Source: Lepidodermella squamata
Taxonomy: Eukaryota; Animalia; Gastrotricha
Assembly (NCBI GenBank): GCA_047495785.1
Contig: JBLDXI010000019.1
Coordinates: forward strand, 1,054,001 to 1,118,000
DNA length: 64,000 bases
Direction: 5' to 3'
Each line of letters starts with the position of its first letter. Within the stretch, counting starts at the first letter, position 1. This document shows positions 9,150 through 50,103 of this stretch, in pieces. Made by a program: the position numbers and the translations under genes. Under the pieces are notes generated by a model. That model made no database searches and was not told where the DNA came from. It worked only from the letters and a program-made list of their open reading frames with translations.

Positions 9150-9935
9150 TCATTGTGATTTTTCTCCGCCATCGACGATTGATTTCAGGCGTTTCAATTC
9201 CCTCTCTAAATGCACATGGGCTCTTTGAAAACGAAGCATCGGCACAATAAGATTTAGCCTATCTATCCGCCGATTAATTTCAGCTATTGTTGACTGAAGA
9301 CGATTTTTCAATCTTTCATCGATAGCACTTATCGCCATTTCGGAAGTTACAAGTGTTTTACCGAACCGAGTAGCAAGTTCTTTTCTCAAATCTGCTATTT
9401 CGGCAGCAATTTCTTTTTCAGATTCAACCCACTCAGGTACAAAGCCCTGGTTATGAATCATTCGCGTGATCAATCGTTCAGTGATATCTCCTTTGCCAGG
9501 TGGTGAAAGATCGTCAGGTGTCAGAGGTTTTCCAGCGCCTTTCAGGTTCTCGAAATATCCGTTTTGCATTGCTTCGGCGATTTGTTCCTCGGCAAGTAGC
9601 ATAAGAACATCTGATGGAGGTAAGCGATTGCGTTTCTTCCATACCGAGGAGCGCTCCAAATGCGATTGGTTAACAGTTTCCGGCTCACCATGCTGTGTAA
9701 TTGATTCCTCGACTGGATCTAACTTTGAGCGGCCTTTCTTGCTTTGAAGCATCTGCCAGTCAACAACGCGTTCCTTGGCTGTGAATGCTCGTTGTCCAGG
9801 GGTCCTTGCGACTTTTTCCTCTTTTTGTGGCTCTTTTGGGACTTCTGTTTTAGACGAAATAGATGCGAAACCATCACGCCTGCCAATTTGGCAAAAGCGA
9901 TTGAATAATCTAACAGAACGAATGGCAACAATCAT
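9150..9935 (-). CDS. DNAJC28: DNAJC28-like (DUF1992) protein; no J-domain visible
   Basis: EEQIAEAMQNGYFENLKGAGKPL and NQGFVPEWV motifs. AG acceptor directly before the ATG. Confidence 0.7.
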   Translation of the reverse strand: MIVAIRSVRLFNRFCQIGRRDGFASISSKTEVPKEPQKEEKVARTPGQRAFTAKERVVDWQMLQSKKGRSKLDPVEESITQHGEPETVNQSHLERSSVWKKRNRLPPSDVLMLLAEEQIAEAMQNGYFENLKGAGKPLTPDDLSPPGKGDITERLITRMIHNQGFVPEWVESEKEIAAEIADLRKELATRFGKTLVTSEMAISAIDERLKNRLQSTIAEINRRIDRLNLIVPMLRFQRAHVHLERELKRLKSIVDGGEKSQ

Positions 9936-26994: not shown

Positions 26995-29649
26995 TCAACT
27001 CGTCTCGTCTTGTTCAGAAAGACTATCAAGCGCTGCAGTGAATTGCATGGCTTCCACGAGAGAATCCTTAAACAGTCGGAGAACCTGCTCGTAGTAGATT
27101 TTAGGGGCCTACAATGGTTATAATATAAGTCATCATAAATATTCATATATTAGAAAATTATTTACCGAAGCTTTCATCTGGGCTAGGCCATAGATTGATT
27201 TCCCATCTAACCGTGACAACTGAGGGTCAGAAATCAAATGCCCGAGACCTTCAGATTGCATCCATTTCTGGACTATTTGAGAGGACCAGGATCTTATCCT
27301 TACAAAATGTGCTGGCACTCCTCTTTGGTTTTTCTCAGTGCCAGACGAGAGGGTAAGATGCAGCAATTGTGACAGTTGACTGATTGCTTGAAGCGAAACA
27401 CTAGATGTATTTGAAGAAACTTCGAAATCTACTGATGTTTGAGTTTTCGACCGGGAAGTCAAGGCAGAAGCGCTGGAGACAGTACTTTTCCGATTGATTG
27501 CAGAATTACCAGAGACGACAGAAAACGCGCCTGAATCTGCAACATCACTTGACTGCTCGACTACTGCAGCTTTACTTGGGCAGAGGGAATCGATTTCACA
27601 TAGTACTTTCGGAAGCACAGCGTCGAATTGCATCTCCTCCATCGAGAAATCAACGTAAAGTTTCGAGCCAATGATAATTCCCAACCAACCAGTTGGCTGA
27701 TATCGGTATTGAAAGTTCAGCGGAACGAATGGTTTCCTTAAATTGAACACGTATTCAGCTTCCGCCCGGCAGTTATTCGATTGTTTATAAGCCTCGCTGT
27801 AACAAATCAGCACGCAACTCGCGTCTTCTACAGCCCTAGCCATCGCCTCAAGGGTAGAGCCATGCATTCTGTCTACGTCTATCCAAACGTTGTGGCCATT
27901 GGCGACAAGATAATCTTTTATACGCAAGACAAGCTCTTGATGTTTCCAACAATAACTGATGAAAATGTGGCCCTTCGAACGCTCGGCATCCTCCTCAACC
28001 GCCTCTTCGACGTCACTGCCATCCTCAGAATGATGAGCAGTTACAACAAGCGACGGATTAGCAACGGATGGTTTCCTTTTCGGCTTTAACGTGCAAGTCT
28101 GAAGCCCGACTCGGCCCATTTGGATGTATTCTAAAGCTCGGCGACTTTTATCGCGATTTTCTTCGTTCGTCGACGTCTCGGCAATTTTTTTCAACGCATC
28201 TATGCAGCCCTCGGTTTCTATAATTCTCTGACGAATCAGCTCACAGAAGGACAAAGCCCATATGCAATCGATTGCTCTTTGCTGTTCTAGGTCAATCCAG
28301 GAATTCGCCAATTTAACGAGAATTGGCAGGGCGCCGCTATCAACAATCTATTAAAGAGATATATAGCTTGAAAATATCGCGATTAAGAACCGTAATACCG
28401 CCTGCTTATTGTAATCGCAAACTGCCAAGTAGGTCAAACTCTCGACAAGCTCCTCTGTAGAAAATCCCATGTAAGTGCGAAAATGGCTATCCAAGGCCTT
28501 TTCCAAGCATTTAATCAACTTGGAAATCACCCCTGTATAAATTAAAATTATTTAAAAAAGTTGAATTAAAGTTGATGCATCGGATACCAAATTTGTCCAA
28601 GTAAGTTTGCGCTACGGCTGATTCGTCCAGAATGCAAGCTACAGAAGCCAGGGCGCTGATTTGAAGCTTCTCGTCTATCTCACCACCGAGGTAAAATTTC
28701 AGAGCGAACACGGCGCCGGCCTTGTCGAATTGCTCTTGTGATTCAGGCAACTTGGCAATATTGTGAATGATGCATAACGCGGTTTCAACCAAATGTTTCA
28801 TGTATTTTTCCGTCTGATATTATTTAACAAGGTAAAATAAATCATCCATTTGAAATTGGGACAAGGCATTATACCTTTGAAGATGGTGGGTGAAGGACAG
28901 AATTTTGGAATTTTTCATCAGCGACAATTCTCGTCAATTGTACGACGATGCCTTTATCCATTAGAATCTTTCAATCGAAACAGTTATTTTCATACGTTTT
29001 TGAGAATAAGAATTATTAAGCGGCCTTACATAACATGCTCTGGAGTTGCAATCGGTTATCGTTGTTAAAATGTTGTTTAGTATCAGGTTCGCTGGAGCGA
29101 CACTGTCGCAGCCATTAAATTCGATAGCTTCCACGAACAAATCTATCAAAAATTCCAATAAAAATCCAGTGGTTTTTACAATCTTTGGAAATTATTTTTA
29201 CCCAGCAAACCAGCGTCAATAAGTTGATCAACAATTTTTCGCCGAGACGGCGGGCAGATCATGTTGATCGAATCCTCGAAATTTATAACGTGCCTCAGTG
29301 ACTCAATCTCCAGTAGCTTTGAGATCTGATACTCGCGGACATTTCCATCGATTGGGGCTTCATCGGGGTCGACAGCAAGCCTAAGCTTTTCAATATAATC
29401 CAAAGTTTCAGCTGTATATTCCTCCTGTGATTTCTCTGGAGCGTTGTTTTCCGATGCTTCCTTAGAATCACCCTGCGGCGATTCAGATTGTTGAGATGAT
29501 TCCGATTCATAACCTGATTGGTTTTCATCCGTAAGTGGATCAGCATGCTCAACAGTAGAGCCTATCTCATCATTTGTTGCAGATATATCTCTCTCGCTGG
29601 TGTTCAATTCAGCGGAATTACTATCTTCTCGAAGATCCGTCGCAGACAT
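26995..29649 (-). CDS. ARM-TIR-SAM protein (copy 1)
   Basis: Acidic N-terminus, ARM-like helices, TIR (HIFISYCW..VWIDVDRMHGSTLEAMARAVE..SNNCRAEAEY), SAM-like WSSQIVQKWMQSEGL..LDGKSI. Last exon 27108-26995 reads APKIYY...ETS*. Confidence 0.85.
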
Positions 29650-30553
29650 TAAGCTGGAAAAACCAAAACTCAGAGTGAAAAAATGAGAACAAGTAAATTG
29701 TGAACCGTTTTTATCATTTTTATTGCCCAAAATATAGAAAGATAATAATTCCGCCCACTCGACTTTTGACTTGTTCTCGCCTTTTCTCGAAAACTTCTTT
29801 TCTGAAAAGATAAGCCCGAGTATAAGACGCACTTGAAGCTTTACTGTTCAGCTGCACCCAATCGCAAGTTTCGCGAAACATTCTTTTTATCCTCCGAATT
29901 AGGTCACGGAGGCAAAAATGATAGAAAACAGTGATTCATTCGCCTATCCCGAACGCTCGTCCAAGTGACATAGTTGAGATTGAGTTAATATTTACACGGG
30001 TTTTTTTTGTCTGAAATCATCCCTAGGATTCTAGTTCCGACACGTTCCAGGTCCCAGAAATAATCCGGATTCGGTATTTTTTAGCTTTATAATCCGAATT
30101 ATGTTGACAATAGGCTACGTATGGCCTCTAAAATAATGATAAAAATAATAAAGCTTTGCCATTTTGTCTTGATTAACTCATTGCACAATTTCATTGCTTG
30201 CAGGAATAGCTGAAAGATGAAAACAGGCAGTTGAAAGTAGAACTCAAATGCTAATCGACTTGGATGACATCAATATAATGGCTGGGGTTGTGGAGCGTGT
30301 TCCTATATTTGGCTGCCAATTGTTTAACGCCCGCTACCTTTTCGACCGGAACCATCGATTTATACCCGTTTTAACAGTTGAGGACATCCCGCAAATATTG
30401 CCTATAAACAAAGAGGAAAACTTCCTATTTTCTGATTGATTCAGTAATGTTTTCAGAGTAAATATTTTGAACAGTATCTTGTATCATTTTGGCAAATAAA
30501 ATCTTACTGATGCCCCAGTTTTCATATTAACTAAAAATTGATGAGAATTTTGA

Positions 30554-41722: not shown

Positions 41723-42324
41723 CCTTAATACGTGATATTCACTCTTTACTCAACATTTTAGCGGGATTTCAGTTTTTATTGCGTTTTAGTTGTGCTAATC
41801 TCATTATGCACCAGCTTTAAGCTGATTTTACTCAGCCAATTTTTGTGCCCGAAGTATTCTTTCACATTATTCTGCTTTAAATTGTGCCTTATTTACTCAT
41901 TTTCAGTGACTGCAACGACATTTTTATTTATGAATTTTATTTATTTATTTATTTATGGTTGTTTATTTGAACGAATGACATTCCACCTCAGTTTCAGTGC
42001 CTTACTTGTGTTTGATTTTGTTCAGCTGCTGACGATGAGCCTTGAGATAACTGTCGATAACATGATATTTAACATGTAATTACACGGTATTTTTTAATAA
42101 AACAAAATGGTTTTGGGAAAAGAAGCCTAATAATGTGGTTTATTTCAAGTGCGTAACGCGAACACAGATAATGGACACCAAAGTAATTTGATTACAACTC
42201 GCAAACAAGTATTGGAGATCTGGCATTATCACAGATTAGCGCCGAATTAATAACACAAAACGCTGAATTTCGTGTTAGTTGAGTAATACTAGAGTTGCCG
42301 AGCCGAAATACAAAAATTGCAGTT

Positions 42325-43424
42325 TTAGCCAGGTTTCCATTTAATATCGCTTCGAATTCCTTGAAATTCTCGGCTAAGTTGCTTGCCATCAGCCCATTTC
42401 GTGTTTAAATAAGCATCCTCTTCATCTTGCGCCAGCTTCTTCATCTCCTCTTGTTTGCGGTGCCAGTGAAGCATCATTTGCTTTTGCTCGGCTTCGCTCA
42501 TTACAGGCTCACGGGCCGGTGCGCCTTGACCTTTCTGTAAATAAGTAAGGTATGAGTAAATAAGCCGCAGACTTGACAAATTAACCCACCTTAGCCAACT
42601 TGACAACAAGTTTCGTTTTGTCATTTTTACCACAAAAATCAGACAATTTCTTGCCGTTGCCTGGCTGAATTTCTTTACCAGCCCACCATAATGTGGACTG
42701 GGTATCGTCTAGAACATCTTGGGAGGCCTGCGTCCCGCCAAGATCCTCCTGGTTGTTCAGTTCAAGATGAACGGGGTCATGAGGCGGCAATCCCATTGGG
42801 TAAACAATCATGAGAAGACCTTTCAACATGTCCATAGCTTCCTTAACGACCGCATAAGTTAGCGGTTCGTTGGTATCGATTTTTTTCTGAAAACATCAAA
42901 ACAACTTATTGACGAAATATTCACACGTCTCATACCCACCTTTGTTACCAAGGCTTTAGCCTCGCCAGTAGTTTTCTTGATAAGATCTCTCATTTGCTGA
43001 TTTGGAGCTGAAAAATGAATTCATCAATCATACACAAAAAATTCAGGCGATTGTGTGAGAACATGCCTCGCCCATTCCGTCTCCCAATTTTGTCCTTATT
43101 TTCGACCCACCCTCCGCTCGGGACACATCGGTCCTCCCATTCATCCCTCAAGCGCAATTCTTGAATTTGTTCATCGGTCAGGCCCTGCATTTGAGGCGGC
43201 AATGTGATGCCATGCTCGCCTAGGTCCTCGAATTCTGTAATAAAAATGTAGTAACTCGATAGACTTTGTTATTTTCCGGACAAACCTGCACACAATCGGT
43301 CTATTTTGAGCCTTCCGTTGTAAATAATTACAAGCTCTCGAACAAGCGTCTCTACGTCGACGTCAATATGCGTATCAAAGAGAAACTGGTTCTCGTCACC
43401 TTTCTTAACATGCAGCCGGACCAT
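42325..43424 (-). CDS. CFAP298: Cilia- and flagella-associated protein 298 (C21orf59)
   Basis: MVRLHVKKGDENQFL, LPPQMQGLTDEQIQEL, IVYPMGLPPHDP, LWWAGKE, KGQGAPAREP, C-terminal IKWKPG. Confidence 0.92.
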
Positions 43425-43753
43425 TTCAAGTAGGCTATAATAATAGTCTAAAGAGTAAATGCGAAGGTATTAAACAACACAATAGTTCTTTTTTTTTACG
43501 GCAGAGACTGAACAACAAAACGTTAGTTACAAACAGTCGCCGAAACAGTATATGGGAAGAACAGCAAAATAGCATAGAGATTGGTTTGCATTTTTGCCAG
43601 AGAAAGAGTGCAGCGTGATGGTAGCGTAATAATAATAAATAATACAAAATAACAAGCGAAATTAATATTTTTAATACTAAATGCGCAATTTTAATCGTTC
43701 ACGAAAATTTGACCTAATAGAAAGAATGAATAATGAGACATGGTATAACGGCA

Positions 43754-45913
43754 TCATCGCTCATCGCCGTACAGTTTGCTAAGACCGCCGAAAAACACTA
43801 CAACGTTGTCGAGATCCGAGTCGAGTTTGCTGCTGACTGACTGGCAGAAAAATTCAGGCGCAGAGTAACGCATCGAGTATAAGTTGTCCAACATTTGCCC
43901 GTTATACCGCGCAAATCTCTCGGAATACGCGCCTAGGCCTATTTCCAGCAACCACTTTTGCACGTCTTCACATGTCATTTTGAGAACTTGACGGGAGTTG
44001 CGTTTAATCGGAACACGACTTGCTAATTCAGCTAATTCTATTCTAGCGTTTTGTTTCAATTTCGAAGAAGATTCCGGTGAAGCAACAGAATCGTCCGTGC
44101 TATCGTTTGAAATCCGTCTCGAAACATTTGACTTGATCGGCGGAAGTTTTTTCTTCTTCTTCATCAATAGCGGAGGAGTTTTGGGTGTTTTAATAGCCAA
44201 CTCTGATAGAAGAATTTCGTCACGTGATGGCGAGTCATCTTGAGGTAGATTTAACATGTCCACAGGGTGGTGATCCGGGCTTTCTCGAGGGCGGCTAGGT
44301 GCTAGAATAATTTCCTCCTCTTCCTCAGCTACGATGATAGGGGAGGGCGCCGATGGCTTTTGGTCACGCGGTAGCATTTTCCGAATATTCGGGTCATTGC
44401 ACTCCTCGGCGAAACGTCGCGCCCTAGCTAGGTCTCCGATTTTTTCGAGTAAAACTCGCATAGCTGACTTGTTGTCACCGAATTTTTTGTAAATAGCGAA
44501 AGCTTCTTCGTACAGGTCATGGCTTTCGGCCATATCAGCAACATCCGCGCCGTCATAGCCGCCCAGGCGCATAGCGTAGTCCATTACTCGACTGTCAGCG
44601 TTGCTGGAACCAGCCATTTTTATAGCAGTAAGAAGCAGCAAATTTTTCAGCGATCTACTATCCAATTTCAACTCAAGTAATAAATGTTCTAAAATGGCGA
44701 GCAAATCCGACGAAAGGCTTGCGCTCATCATCGATTTCACCAGACAGCTCAACGCATCTTGATCAGACTGCGGGCCATTAGCAATCGCGGAAACTTCGTC
44801 GATAAATAATTGATCGGTCGAAATGCCTGAGGTTAGCAAGCTAGACCAGATGTGCGAATTTTTGAGCCTCAGCGCATATTGAAATCGTTCTTTCAAACGC
44901 TCCTCAGCTTCGCACTGCTGGATTATCTCGCGATCTATGTTGAGATCTTGCAAAGACTCGACTATTTCGCGCTTATGAAAATTTTCGCCAAATAAATCGA
45001 CAACAAGTTTAGCGATTGTTGTTCGATCGACCTTCTCAACAGAGCTAAGGGCCTGAAGACATTGAACTGCATCGTTTAGCTTCAATTCTCGCAGGTAACT
45101 AAGAATCCAATCATAATCAGTTTCAAGCAGCTTTGATCCGAGGTCGGATCCGAATAGCCTCTTTTTATCACCAATCGATTGGTAATTTTTCAATGCGAGC
45201 TTAGGGTAGCCGTGTTTTTCGCACAATTGAGCGATTTTCTTTGCATCATAATGCGTAAATTTGTTAGATTCTAAAACTGAAACAGCATCTTCCGATTTGT
45301 ATGAGAAGCAGACCTCGAAAAACTTGGTTTGAAGAGCACCATCACTTTCCTTATCCGATTGGAGAATTTCTTTCAAAAATTCCACGCAATGCTCAAGCAG
45401 GTTAGACTTCACGAAAACGTCGACAATCGCCGTTGAGCTTACAACAAATTTGCCTTTTTCACTATTAATCGACGCTAGTTTGCTGGCAAGTTTAACACCC
45501 TGCTCGATAGTCTCGCCACTGAGAATTGACTGAAGCAGATACAAATAATCCTCCTCTTTATACCCGATGGACAGCGAATGGTGAACAATTTTATCGAACT
45601 GACCGGACTCGGCGTAGGTGCGAATAATTTTGTGGGGCGCCTGAGCTCGTAAATAAATTGCCAGAGCTAATTCGCCGTCAAACGGCCGAACAGCATCGCC
45701 CATCTCCTCGGTGCACGCCAGTTTCCCAGGTTCGCCCAGCCATCGTCGCACTAAATCATTTTGGCCTTTTTGTAGGGCTAAAACACAGGCATCGATCGAT
45801 TCGCGAGTATTCAATGGATCAGTTCTCTAAAACAAAGCATAAAATCAGCAATCAATTCATGGCTGAATAATTAATCAGTTCACCTCCAGTAGATATTCGA
45901 AATTTGTCGGCAT
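43754..45913 (-). CDS. Chimeric clathrin-heavy-chain-repeat plus SAM-like protein (~700 aa)
   Basis: Exon 45913-45884, intron 45883-45827. CHC motifs CTEEMGDAV..LALAIYLRA, FTHYDAKKIAQLCEK, LKNLLLLTAIK, LYEEAFAIYKKF, IGDLARARRFAEECN. C-terminal SAM-like domain paralogous to that of the neighbouring gene. Confidence 0.85.
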
Positions 45914-46382
45914 GGCTATGGTTTATGTTTGCACCATTGGCAACAGCAATAATTTCGGAGCATAGTTTCAATAAAAGCTCCTAAAAATAAACAAAATATT
46001 CAACAAACTTCAATTTTTTATTCAAGCTTTGCATGCCCAAACACAACAGCTAGAAAACGGTTAACAACAGGCATATTTAAAAATAAAAAAATGTATATCA
46101 CAGTATTACGAAAAAATCAAACTCGATCACAAAAATATAACCATACAAATCTGGCAAGCCCTTGTCAATATATCGCAGGAGATATGAGTATGTTTTGCTG
46201 AATATTTCGTGCATAGTTTTTTCAGTTTTCAGTTATAACAGGCGTCAAGTTAATTTAAGAAACTACAACGCTTGCATCTGTTCACTAAAGGGAAGAACCG
46301 ACATTGACAAGGGCAAAAATTATTATCAAAATAATTTCTCAAGCCTATAGCTAGAATTCGTCTCGAATCATTAAATCATTGG

Positions 46383-49300
46383 CTAATTGTCATAAAGCTT
46401 GTTGAGTGCGGTAAAAAATAAAATAACGTTGTCAAGATCACCGTCCAGTTTGGCACTCAGCGACTGGCAAACAAATTCCGGAGCTGAATGATGCAGAACA
46501 TAAAGGTTATCAACCATTTGACCGTCGTAACGTGAGAAGCGTTCGGTAAAATCACTTAAGCCAATGTCACTGATCCATCGCTGAACGTCGTCACGGTTCA
46601 TCGCAAGCACGCGCGTACTGCGCCGTGGTAGTTTTACGTTCGAACTATCGGGCGCTTTCGCAGGCTGTGAATTATCGCGCTTGGGCCGGCGTTTCAGCAG
46701 TACCCTGTCCGTGCTTCTCACCTCTTGGCTGCCGAGGCCCATTAACCGCATCAATCTTTTCATGCCCTCTTCAAAGCTGTAACGCCGTCCTGAGACATCA
46801 ACTGTGTCCCTCGAGCCTAATAGAGCAGATATCCAACTCGTGAAATTAAGATGGAAATCCATTCTCAAGTAAATCGTCGGCCGGCGAATGTGATTAGCTA
46901 ACTCAGCTTCGGTTCGGCATCGGGGGTCGATTTTATAACGCTCGGAGCAGCAAATCAACACGATATTAGAAGATTCAATTGCGGCTACCGAAGCGGAGAG
47001 AGGCAGCGAATCAGGACCAGCTGCAGGATCGGGCTGAACCATGAAACCGCATGCGCGAAGTTTTTTCGCAATTTTTCCAACCGTTTCCGAGGAAGTGCTA
47101 GCGTAACTAATATAAACTTGACCGCCGGGAGGATTGCCACCTGAAATGGATTAAGCGTTAAATTCACGAAGGAAGAAAAATCAACACAGGCAAAAGTTCA
47201 AAGTTTCAGCTTGAAAAATTGAATTTGAAGCAACACGAGAAAACAACCCAATGGGAACAAGTTCAAAGATTTAGTCAACTCAATAACCTGAATTAAACTC
47301 CGTCAAGAAAAATCCTATCGTTACGCAAATTCATGCACATTAAAAGCATGCAAACGCTTTTTACTCAAAAATTACCCGTATGATTGTGCATAGCTGATTT
47401 TGAGCCGTTGTAGTCGCGATTCTCCAGCAGCCATATCAGCGATTGGCAGTTGAACCTCACAGATGCATTCGAGCTCCGTTCACCCAACTTTCGAATGACA
47501 GTAACGGCATCCTCCATTGCAACTAGCTCCTTTAAAGCCGTCGCAGCAGCTCCGAAGTTGGAGCCAGCAATCAAGGACCACAGAGCATGAGCAGCCATTG
47601 CCTGCTCAGCGTGTGAATGCGAGCTGAGAAAGGAGGCGAAAAGATTGAGTACACCCAGTTTAACTAGCTCGTTTTTGTGTCCGTCGTGCATCGCTAATCG
47701 CGCGAGAGTCCTCAGAAGTTCGAGGGCATCAAGATTAACACCTTGTTGACTGGGTTGGCCATCAGTGAAAATGTTTCCTTCGTTTGTTGAATCGGCTTCT
47801 CGAGGCGATTGCGATATGCTATCAGCTGCAGATCTTGAGGTCGAAAGTCCATCGTCGGGGTTATGGCGATGCCTCTTCTTCTTCGAGTGGATATTCCTTG
47901 AAAATTCTTGCAGTGCTTCGATCAAATATCTCACTGAGCCGGTTTCATCAAGAATTCGCATCGGATCGTGGTCGAACAATATGTTTGCCATCGTCATTGT
48001 TGCCATCAGACGCATGGCATTGCTAGGCGAGGAGGCGAGGAGCGTTCGCAGAATTTTCGGCACTTTAACTTTGTCGAAATGATGATCTGTTTCTGGAACG
48101 CAACTCATGCTATATAACGTGGCCACGCAAAGAACGACGAGATCGTTCACATTCTAAAAAGATACAGCAGGTGATCAGGTTACGATGTCAAAATAAAGCG
48201 ATTTACCTTGCTTGGACCGGTCATACTCATCGCAGGCTTGTGTTGCAAATTGAACAATAACACGGGAATAGCACCAGCATCAGCCAGCTCGCGAGCAAAA
48301 ACGATGTGTTTGTGCGAATAATCGGACATAATGACGAGGATACCCGATGTAACCGCCCAAGTAAGGTCTGTCATGAAAACATTCGAACTGGTCAACTTCT
48401 TCAGCATATTCACTAGGATTTCGGCACTCTTTTCCTCGACCATAATTGTACCGATTTCTGACGACAATTGACGAGTTGCGGAGAACACCAACATGTAAAC
48501 CGCTTGGTGAGCTTCAAGGCTGTCGTAATGCCGGAGATATCGCAACTTCTTGATAGCATTTCGTATGGTTTGTAAATACAATCCCTTGTTTCGCTCGTTT
48601 TGTTGAACTGCGCGATATAAAAATTATATGTGCTATCGTATACATATCACGTGGAAACTTACTATTATGAATAGCCTCGATTGAATCGCTCAATTTGTTC
48701 GAATTTAGCTGAGGCAAATTCTGTTGATTTCGATCGTTCGTGAAGTAGTAATTCGCGTATTTCTTAGTAATCAATCCCTGTCGCTGTGCATTCAATGGAG
48801 GTAGCCTCTCATCCAAAGGTTGCCTAGGCGTAAAGGCAGGTTCGGGCGCTCTCAGAGGTTTCAAATGAGGCTGTTGCTGAGATGGATAGCTAATTGGCTC
48901 GTAACCCTTAGGCCTAGATTTTGTGTCAAATTGCTGAGCGGTGGTGTAAGTTGGGCCTTGCTTGGTTCGTTGAGTTTTTTGTGGCTTTCTCTGGTTCTCA
49001 TCGTGGGGCCCGTTGTCTTCGGGAATCAATTCTTCGTCCCATCCTTGACCTGGTGGCGGTAAGAATTTCGATTCATTGCCCAAAGCAATCTCCTCTTCAA
49101 TGTCTTTATCTTTGCGCTTGCGGTGTTTGTGCTTGGCAGGTCCGCTGAATTCAGGAGGTGTAGCCACATTATCTGCATTGGATTCTCGAGAATGAGGTAC
49201 TGAGCCTTCACCAAGGACTTGCTTAGGTTGAGGCCGAACCGGATGAGTGAAAGGTTCATGGTCAGGGTCCAACGCCGACGTTGTTCGCTTATTTTTTGTG

Positions 49301-50103
49301 GCCTCATCCCGAGCTGGAGATGACTTCCGAGATTTGCTAGGCTTCGATGCCTTTTCTGACTCCTTGCTACTAACTTTGGGGTGGCTCTCCTTTGGTTCCT
49401 CGACCTGGGCCTCAGAGCGTACCGATTTCTCAGGAGAGCGTGATTTTGACTTTTCCTTCGGAGCTACGTCACCATTTAGAGACGATACGTCGGAGTGATC
49501 TCCTCTGCTCCGCCCTCCAGATTTTTTAGAATCGCCGGCTTCGCCATGAGCGTGATCCTTCTTAGACTCCTTATCGTCCGCATTGCTTTTTGAATGTGAT
49601 TCAATCACGATTTCTTCCGCATTTCCAGTGTCGTTTTGTTCTTCCTTGGATTTCTCATCTCTTGGGGAATGCCCTTCTTTATGCCTCGGACTATGCGGAG
49701 GGCTGACCACTTCATCGTCGTTAATCACCTGCGTGCCATCACGAGAAGAACGCTCATCTTTGTGATGACTCTTGTCGTCTTCTCCATCCTTCTCACCATC
49801 CTTCTCACCTTCGTCCCCGCTACCCTTCTTGCTGCTTCCACTGCTACTGCTGCTACTGCTGCTACTACTCTTGCTCTTACTCCTCCGCCCACTTTTCTCG
49901 TCGTTTGATTTCTTGCTCTTTTTACTTGACTTGCTTTGCGCGCTGTTGCCGTGTTTCTCAACAGTAGCAGGAGATTCAGGGTCATGACGCGATATCTCAT
50001 CCATTTGAACATCACCGGTATCACGACCTTCAGCGTCCGGGGAAGGCGAAGCCTTGCTGCGATGTTTCACTTCATGTGAGCCATCGGGAGCTTCCGATTC
50101 CAT
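46383..50103 (-). CDS. ARM-TIR-SAM protein (copy 2) with long disordered N-terminus
   Basis: Introns 48662-48608, 48206-48154 and 47375-47141. TIR VYISYAS...CSERYKIDPRCRTEAEL; SAM-like MNRDDVQRWISDIGL..YDGQM. Confidence 0.85.

Follow-up and report, generated by a model that had tools for sequence, protein, structure and literature searches.

A clathrin-leg/SAM chimera gene adjacent to an ARM-TIR-SAM gene in the gastrotrich Lepidodermella squamata

The clathrin heavy chain (CHC) is an essential and very slowly evolving coat protein, and TIR NADases are enzymes that are activated by clustering. Among animal TIR proteins, SARM1 and C. elegans TIR-1 have the layout ARM-SAM-SAM-TIR, and a further group of invertebrate proteins is of ARM-TIR-SAM type. 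In the clathrin lattice, the ankles of the heavy chains pass below the vertices, beside the auxilin site (PMC2830701, PMC5897774), and a site in the ankle binds TACC3 (PMC5897774). Here we describe a pair of adjacent, co-oriented genes from Lepidodermella squamata in which parts of these systems are brought together. The pair lies in a 64,000-nucleotide stretch of assembly GCA_047495785.1 (contig JBLDXI010000019.1, positions 1,054,001 to 1,118,000, forward strand), the whole of which we call the window and from whose first letter all coordinates are counted; the gene features given below are on its minus strand. One gene of the pair, the chimera (43754-45913), joins 2 pieces of the CHC leg to a C-terminal SAM domain. 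The other, its upstream neighbour (46383-50103), encodes an ARM-TIR-SAM protein.

Structure and expression of the chimeric gene

The chimera has 2 exons and encodes 700 amino acids, with its ATG at 45913 and its stop codon at 43754. We compared the window with sequence contigs from 2 other samples, runs X1 and X2, and treated X1 as RNA because its contigs skip the chimera intron and 2 introns of the neighbour. Exon 1 (45884-45913) supplies only 10 codons. It is the sole frame-keeping GT..AG solution, and the corresponding joint, 45826>45884, is present in X1 RNA contigs, from which the 57-nt GT..AG intron 1 (45827-45883) has been spliced. A related species, described below, has no intron at this position. 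Read by eye against CHC, exon 1 appears to resemble CHC ~418-427.

The clathrin-derived portion was delimited by phmmer searches against all PDB chains. Segment 1 (44951-45826; open reading frame residues 2-288) aligns to CHC 428-702 with E 2e-46, and comprises the end of the linker, the ankle, CHCR1 and the start of CHCR2; it thus includes the TACC3-binding ankle site, near the auxilin site. Segment 2 (44360-44938; residues 293-485) aligns to CHC 926-1115 with E 4e-33, and comprises the end of CHCR3 plus CHCR4. The 2 matches are separated by 4 residues, and ~223 CHC residues (703-925) have been lost internally. The Pfam Clathrin model scored 127.8 bits on the chimera, against a cut-off of 29.6, with its best stretch at 351-477, and the CHC parts are about 38-40% identical to partial CHCs. 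Homology begins at CHC ~418-428 and there is no sequence past CHC residue 1115, so that the knee, light-chain site, proximal leg and trimerisation domain are lacking; tblastn searches with propeller-bearing CHC fragments located no beta-propeller, proximal leg or trimerisation sequence anywhere in the window. The chimera therefore has no complete seven-repeat CHCR leg, and its homology to the CHC leg is specific and collinear. These results bear out an initial annotation of this DNA, made from the letters alone, which had matched the gene to CHC ~420-700 and ~940-1110 and had noted both the internal deletion and the absence of the beta-propeller, proximal leg and trimerisation domain.

A low-complexity linker of ~120 amino acids (43994-44359) follows the clathrin-derived portion, and one RNA contig (44171-44588) crosses the border between the two. 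The only linker motif kept in both species is a Lys-run followed by LPPI(K/R) at 44132-44161, which possibly has a nuclear-localisation or docking role.

The remaining ~80 amino acids and the stop codon (43754-43993) were assigned to a SAM domain by AlphaFold2 modelling, structure comparison and profile search. Taken alone, the chimera tail scores 19.8-22.4 bits with SAM_1, just below the Pfam cut-off of 23. When a profile built from the chimera and neighbour tails was run against 1.84 billion representative proteins, 38 proteins were recovered. Those of at least 500 amino acids were mostly ARM-TIR-SAM proteins, the named ones coming from an amphioxus, a crinoid, an annelid and a hemichordate. 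When aligned, their tails stand apart as a SAM subtype of their own, which starts with W..V..WL and contains the motif APEF(F/Y). A 33-member profile of this family matched SAM domains in PDB (Liprin-beta at 1e-10, SARM1 at 1e-5, and also SMS1), and 12-14 of the 33 members matched SAM_1 or SAM_3. A single-sequence AlphaFold model of the tail was discarded (predicted local distance difference test score, pLDDT, 45); the AlphaFold2 model from the 33-sequence alignment reached pLDDT 87.7. The top Foldseek rows for the latter model were nearly all SAM domains, and VIA-align gave Z 8-10 and root-mean-square deviations of 1.6-2.2 A over 63-68 residues with the SAM domains of Sfmbt, SARM1, Shank2 and DGK-delta (Z 10.0 for Sfmbt; Z 9.6, 1.8 A and 67 residues for SARM1 SAM1). 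As modelled, the chimera tail has the compact fold of 5 helices that characterises SAM domains.

Conservation and origin of the fusion

An orthologue search had been proposed in the initial annotation, and the tail-profile search did yield an orthologue of the chimera, a 690-amino acid protein (P0006) of a related species. It is 43% identical to the chimera by BLASTP and 48% over a spliced MAFFT alignment, and it shares the start of the chimera, the CHC deletion junction (without a gap), the linker and the SAM tail. The gene pair is conserved as well: in the related species the order ACAD / ARM-TIR-SAM / chimera / CFAP298 is found on 3 independent ENA metagenome assemblies (L001-L003) and mirrors that of the window. 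Identity between the 2 species is 51% for CHC segment 1, 41% for segment 2, 31% for the linker and 72% for the SAM tail (79% over its core). The chimera thus evolves faster than the adjoining ACAD housekeeping gene, for which the identity is 79%.

Synonymous sites are saturated between the species (proportion of differing synonymous sites, pS, about 0.83), and we therefore used within-species differences in place of the ratio of non-synonymous to synonymous substitution rates. Between the window and X1/X2 we counted 13 synonymous and 2 non-synonymous differences in the chimera, and 19 and 1, respectively, in the neighbour; haplotypes of the chimera in the related species differ at 8 codons synonymously and at 1 non-synonymously. 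For the pooled chimera differences, P is about 3e-10 against neutrality, if 25% of changes are assumed to be synonymous by chance. The chimera is under purifying selection, and it is an expressed, spliced and intact protein-coding gene. That its open reading frame is intact had been claimed at the outset, and the frame proved to be intact in all 4 sequences.

The tails of the chimera and the neighbour are identical at 51/96 positions (53%; E 4e-37) and at 45/73 (62%) over the core; the initial annotation had counted 47/78 manually. In a maximum-likelihood tree of 36 tails, from which the other ARM-TIR-SAM paralogues of this genome, lying outside the window, were left out, the 4 tails from the 2 genes in the 2 species group as a single clade (100/98), in which the chimera orthologues pair with each other (98/94), as do those of the neighbour (99/91). 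Because orthologous tails pair up in this manner, the tail sequences place the duplication before the species split, without later homogenisation. The paralogous tails are fixed differently at 11 positions, and 37 of 73 positions are invariant in all 4.

Further evidence comes from an intron. In the related species a phase-0 intron interrupts both tails at one and the same codon boundary, where Ser meets the APEF motif (L001 11951-12012 and ~9420-9478). The window contains a third ARM-TIR-SAM gene, in whose tail a 57-nt phase-0 intron (27109-27165) occupies this place too, between Ser and AP... This shared position supports a copy of the SAM region at the DNA level. This ancestral intron is absent from both the chimera and the neighbour of the window, either because two parallel losses took place or because gene conversion carried a short tract from one of these adjacent paralogues to the other. 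The length of the intron in the related species is 62 or 64 nt, depending on the assembly, and for this reason the ENA gene calls, which read through it, are 690 or 680 amino acids long. The third gene itself spans 26998-29832, with its last exon ending near 26998, and scores 83.5 bits with TIR_2 on the open reading frame at 27133-28311.

We conclude that the chimera is a lineage-restricted gene, a partial CHC copy that became fused, before the 2 species diverged, with a copy of the exon region encoding the C-terminal SAM domain of the neighbour. A local duplication had been postulated initially, and for the tail it is upheld by the 100/98 clade, the adjacency and co-orientation of the genes and the shared intron position. 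We regard the anatomy and evolutionary history described to this point as very nearly certain.

The neighbouring gene and the proposed function of the pair

The neighbour has 4 exons and encodes 1125 amino acids. Exon 1 (48663-50103), on which an RNA contig was found at 48663-49399, encodes a 480-amino acid extension rich in Ser, Lys and Glu that is probably disordered. Exons 2 (48207-48607) and 3 (47376-48153) encode the ARM-repeat region, which carries an inserted disordered loop. Exon 4 (46383-47140) encodes the TIR domain (about 46752-47117), a linker and the SAM tail (about 46386-46622), and ends with the stop codon. Introns 48154-48206 and 47141-47375 were seen as spliced joints in RNA contigs; intron 48608-48662, and with it the upper boundary of exon 2 at 48607, was deduced from the GT..AG sequence and from RNA-contig loose ends that pair up. 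The ARM region matched residues 138-335 of an amphioxus ARM-TIR-SAM protein (P0028; BLASTP, E 3e-08), and TIR_2 scored 46.2 bits, against a cut-off of 28. A phmmer search of the last exon against PDB was blank, and a family profile was used instead. The Glu at the catalytic position is invariant across a 10-sequence TIR alignment, and the family TIR profile aligns it to the Glu in the C..E motif of the RPS4 and Cat1 TIRs. All 3 features of the invertebrate ARM-TIR-SAM proteins (ARM repeats, TIR_2 and the APEF-type SAM) are thus present in the neighbour. The chimera is a derivative of this family and not a member of it, because only the SAM tail is present. ARM-TIR-SAM proteins of other phyla, of ~600-700 amino acids, do not have the 480-amino acid N-terminal extension; in the related species the gene call upstream of the chimera is 881 amino acids long, which suggests a similar extension there.

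What might the chimera do beside such a gene? Our favoured reading, held tentatively and with slightly less than even confidence, is that the chimera, itself without TIR, is the SAM partner of its neighbour and carries a scaffold of clathrin ankle and distal leg. We favour it because the SAM tail is the most protected part of the chimera, because the nearest relative of this tail is that of the conserved neighbour, and because TIR enzymes act by clustering. The chimera would act through its SAM domain, the best-conserved part of the protein, which may co-oligomerise with the SAM domain of the neighbour and possibly also with itself. In this way a TIR-less subunit with a rigid clathrin-leg solenoid would enter the TIR assembly of the neighbour. 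Such a subunit could serve as a regulator, by spacing out or capping the TIR array, or as an adaptor, by bringing the array to binders of the clathrin ankle and distal leg. The initial annotation had suggested a possible adaptor or decoy that couples a TIR enzyme to coated membranes; here too, such a connection is put forward as a hypothesis.

Several observations weigh against a SAM partnership. The adjacency of the genes may merely reflect how the chimera was born, and the single C-terminal SAM here contrasts with SARM1, whose octamer is built from tandem SAMs. In both species the TIR domain of the neighbour diverges from the family consensus after the first strand and helix (46950-47050), with V-Q-P-D and a Pro/Ala-rich loop where the consensus has V-W-x-D and a Gly-Ser loop; because of this departure in sequence, the activity of this TIR domain is uncertain. 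The CHC parts of the chimera evolve fast, and the ankle has changed: when the phmmer alignment was compared with the known TACC3 contacts (PMC5897774), L476, L480 and R481 were found to be retained, D455 to be replaced by Gly, and L503/Y504 by His-His, the last in both species. The alignment points to an ankle binding surface that is kept but altered. Also, among the RNA contigs listed, none covers the entire coding sequence of the chimera, and the Logan contigs of X1 and X2 both break at 44140-44170. The gap in coverage would fit a wrong assembly, a gene model joined in error or a pseudogene in decay. However, the break falls on a run of Lys codons, the frame from CHC through linker to SAM is uninterrupted, save for one clean intron, in 3 metagenome assemblies of the related species, and an intact open reading frame in 4/4 sequences is accompanied by a strong dominance of synonymous changes. 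We consider explanations of this kind to be effectively refuted.

The pattern of conservation within the CHC part bears on a different interpretation, possible though on the whole unlikely, in which the chimera is a trafficking protein independent of the TIR gene. The SAM domain would then replace the lost trimerisation hub, the neighbour would be the donor of the SAM exon only, and a multi-legged assembly of ankles and distal legs might modulate or compete with clathrin lattice contacts or partners that bind the ankle, for example auxilin/GAK or TACC3. The best-kept CHC stretch is indeed the ankle (CHC 445-500, including L476, L480 and R481), the segment that in lattices crosses under the vertices beside the auxilin site (PMC2830701, PMC5897774), and the 11 fixed differences from the neighbour's tail would fit a SAM domain with a specificity of its own. 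Yet the terminal domain, light-chain site and proximal leg are missing, lattice contacts are doubtful for a distal leg shortened by the deletion of 223 residues, and the CHC parts are only 41-51% conserved, compared with 79% for the housekeeping enzyme.

The faster evolution of the clathrin-derived part than of the SAM tail is also what would be expected of a target mimic, and so could be explained if the 2 genes were a decoy-sensor and executor pair. By this account, which is modelled on the plant paired NLRs with an integrated decoy and which we think improbable, the clathrin-leg fragment would mimic a host target of pathogen effectors, and binding of an effector would alter SAM co-assembly and switch on the TIR domain. 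The conservation of the adjacent pair and the retention of Glu at the catalytic position of the TIR would agree with it; polymorphism that is purifying and not diversifying (13:2 and 8:1), and a head-to-tail gene arrangement unlike that of the head-to-head plant pairs, would not. Still more improbable, in our judgement, is an animal counterpart of the plant integrated-decoy pairs, in which a clathrin mimic, monitored through SAM co-assembly, would switch a TIR NADase on or off; there the trigger might be a clathrin-hijacking pathogen factor or the state of the clathrin lattice itself.

Returning to the SAM partnership, if the 2 SAM domains pair, the chimera would be a naturally occurring subunit, devoid of TIR, in a TIR-SAM assembly. 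It would offer a handle on the tuning and targeting of animal TIR NADase clustering outside SARM1, and would hint that membrane-coat machinery is connected with TIR signalling. Otherwise, the chimera would still be unusual as a piece of clathrin leg whose oligomerisation hub has been substituted.

Some features of the locus as a whole may be recorded here. The window is eukaryotic in character, with GT..AG introns of ~55 nt and a G+C content of about 44%; for the published Lepidodermella squamata assembly the value is 43%. The neighbour, the chimera and CFAP298 (42300-50103) have the same orientation and are separated by spacers of only 469 and ~330 nt, as is also found in the related species (L001 5898-13251); given a trans-splicing animal, the 3 genes could form an operon-like unit. 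The bins between them show RNA-contig depth, a measure that cannot prove a single transcript. A spliced leader at the loose RNA-contig end at 46094 was ruled out, as there is no AG acceptor there. In the 3' region of the chimera (43669-43680), X1 and X2 contigs depart from the window sequence with identical loose ends in a CATAA-repeat stretch, which suggests that the samples differ from the assembly by an indel or insertion. Run X2 contains a back-joint that leads from 48999 to 45977 through 9 intervening letters, together with long loose ends in 45977-45997 and 48979-48999; a structural variant, or a short repeat common to these places, may be the cause.

Comparison with known systems

We looked for the architecture of the chimera elsewhere. 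Among the 38 matches to the tail profile, a Pfam scan of 10 and the match lengths of the set disclosed no chimera other than P0006. A word-indexed protein search with the whole chimera returned only partial CHCs of other organisms, and the same search with tail residues 590-686 returned no match. In JGI metagenome contigs, chimera-specific peptide patterns gave pattern matches but no confirmed relative, and a feature search of the ESM Atlas gave no usable match. No paper combining the terms 'clathrin heavy chain', 'SAM domain' and 'TIR domain' was found in the literature, and TIR, clathrin and SARM all go unmentioned in the Lepidodermella genome paper. The clathrin-leg/SAM architecture is real and apparently new to description, as was supposed in the initial annotation; the protein collections and literature searched gave only the orthologue P0006. 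It shows, in a clean and datable case, how domain shuffling can create a new protein architecture: a fragment of a coat protein was joined to an oligomerisation module from a TIR gene family that has expanded, and in 2 species the product was then retained, under purifying selection, as part of a linked pair.

Compared with the clathrin heavy chain (CLTC; PDB 1XI4, 6SCT), the chimera is collinear with leg residues 428-702 and 926-1115, but its divergence exceeds by far what an orthologous CHC would show, and its C-terminus is a SAM domain. With SARM1 and TIR-1 the gene pair shares the same set of domains, namely ARM, TIR with Glu at the catalytic position, and SAM. The order differs: the neighbour consists of a disordered N-terminus, ARM, TIR and one SAM, whereas the chimera has neither ARM nor TIR. 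The invertebrate ARM-TIR-SAM proteins (for example Branchiostoma XP_066300443.1, Antedon XP_071952404.1, Owenia CAH1775998.1 and Saccoglossus XP_006816972.2) have the same C-terminal SAM subtype; the neighbour has their full layout, and the chimera swaps the ARM-TIR body for pieces of clathrin leg.

The SAM heterodimers Drosophila Mae-Yan (1SV0), Scm-Sfmbt (5J8Y) and CNK-HYP (3BS5) are among the structural matches to the chimera tail. The likeness to such SAM-partner regulators is one of logic only, in that a SAM protein without the effector domain of its partner could cap or join an assembly; in the chimera, however, the non-SAM part is a clathrin fragment. The plant paired NLRs of the RRS1/RPS4 type are likewise genetically linked pairs: one member has a TIR domain, and the other carries the copy of a domain that stems from an unrelated protein of the host. 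Unlike them, the gastrotrich pair has no NB-ARC or LRR and is arranged head to tail, and any coupling between its members would be through SAM.

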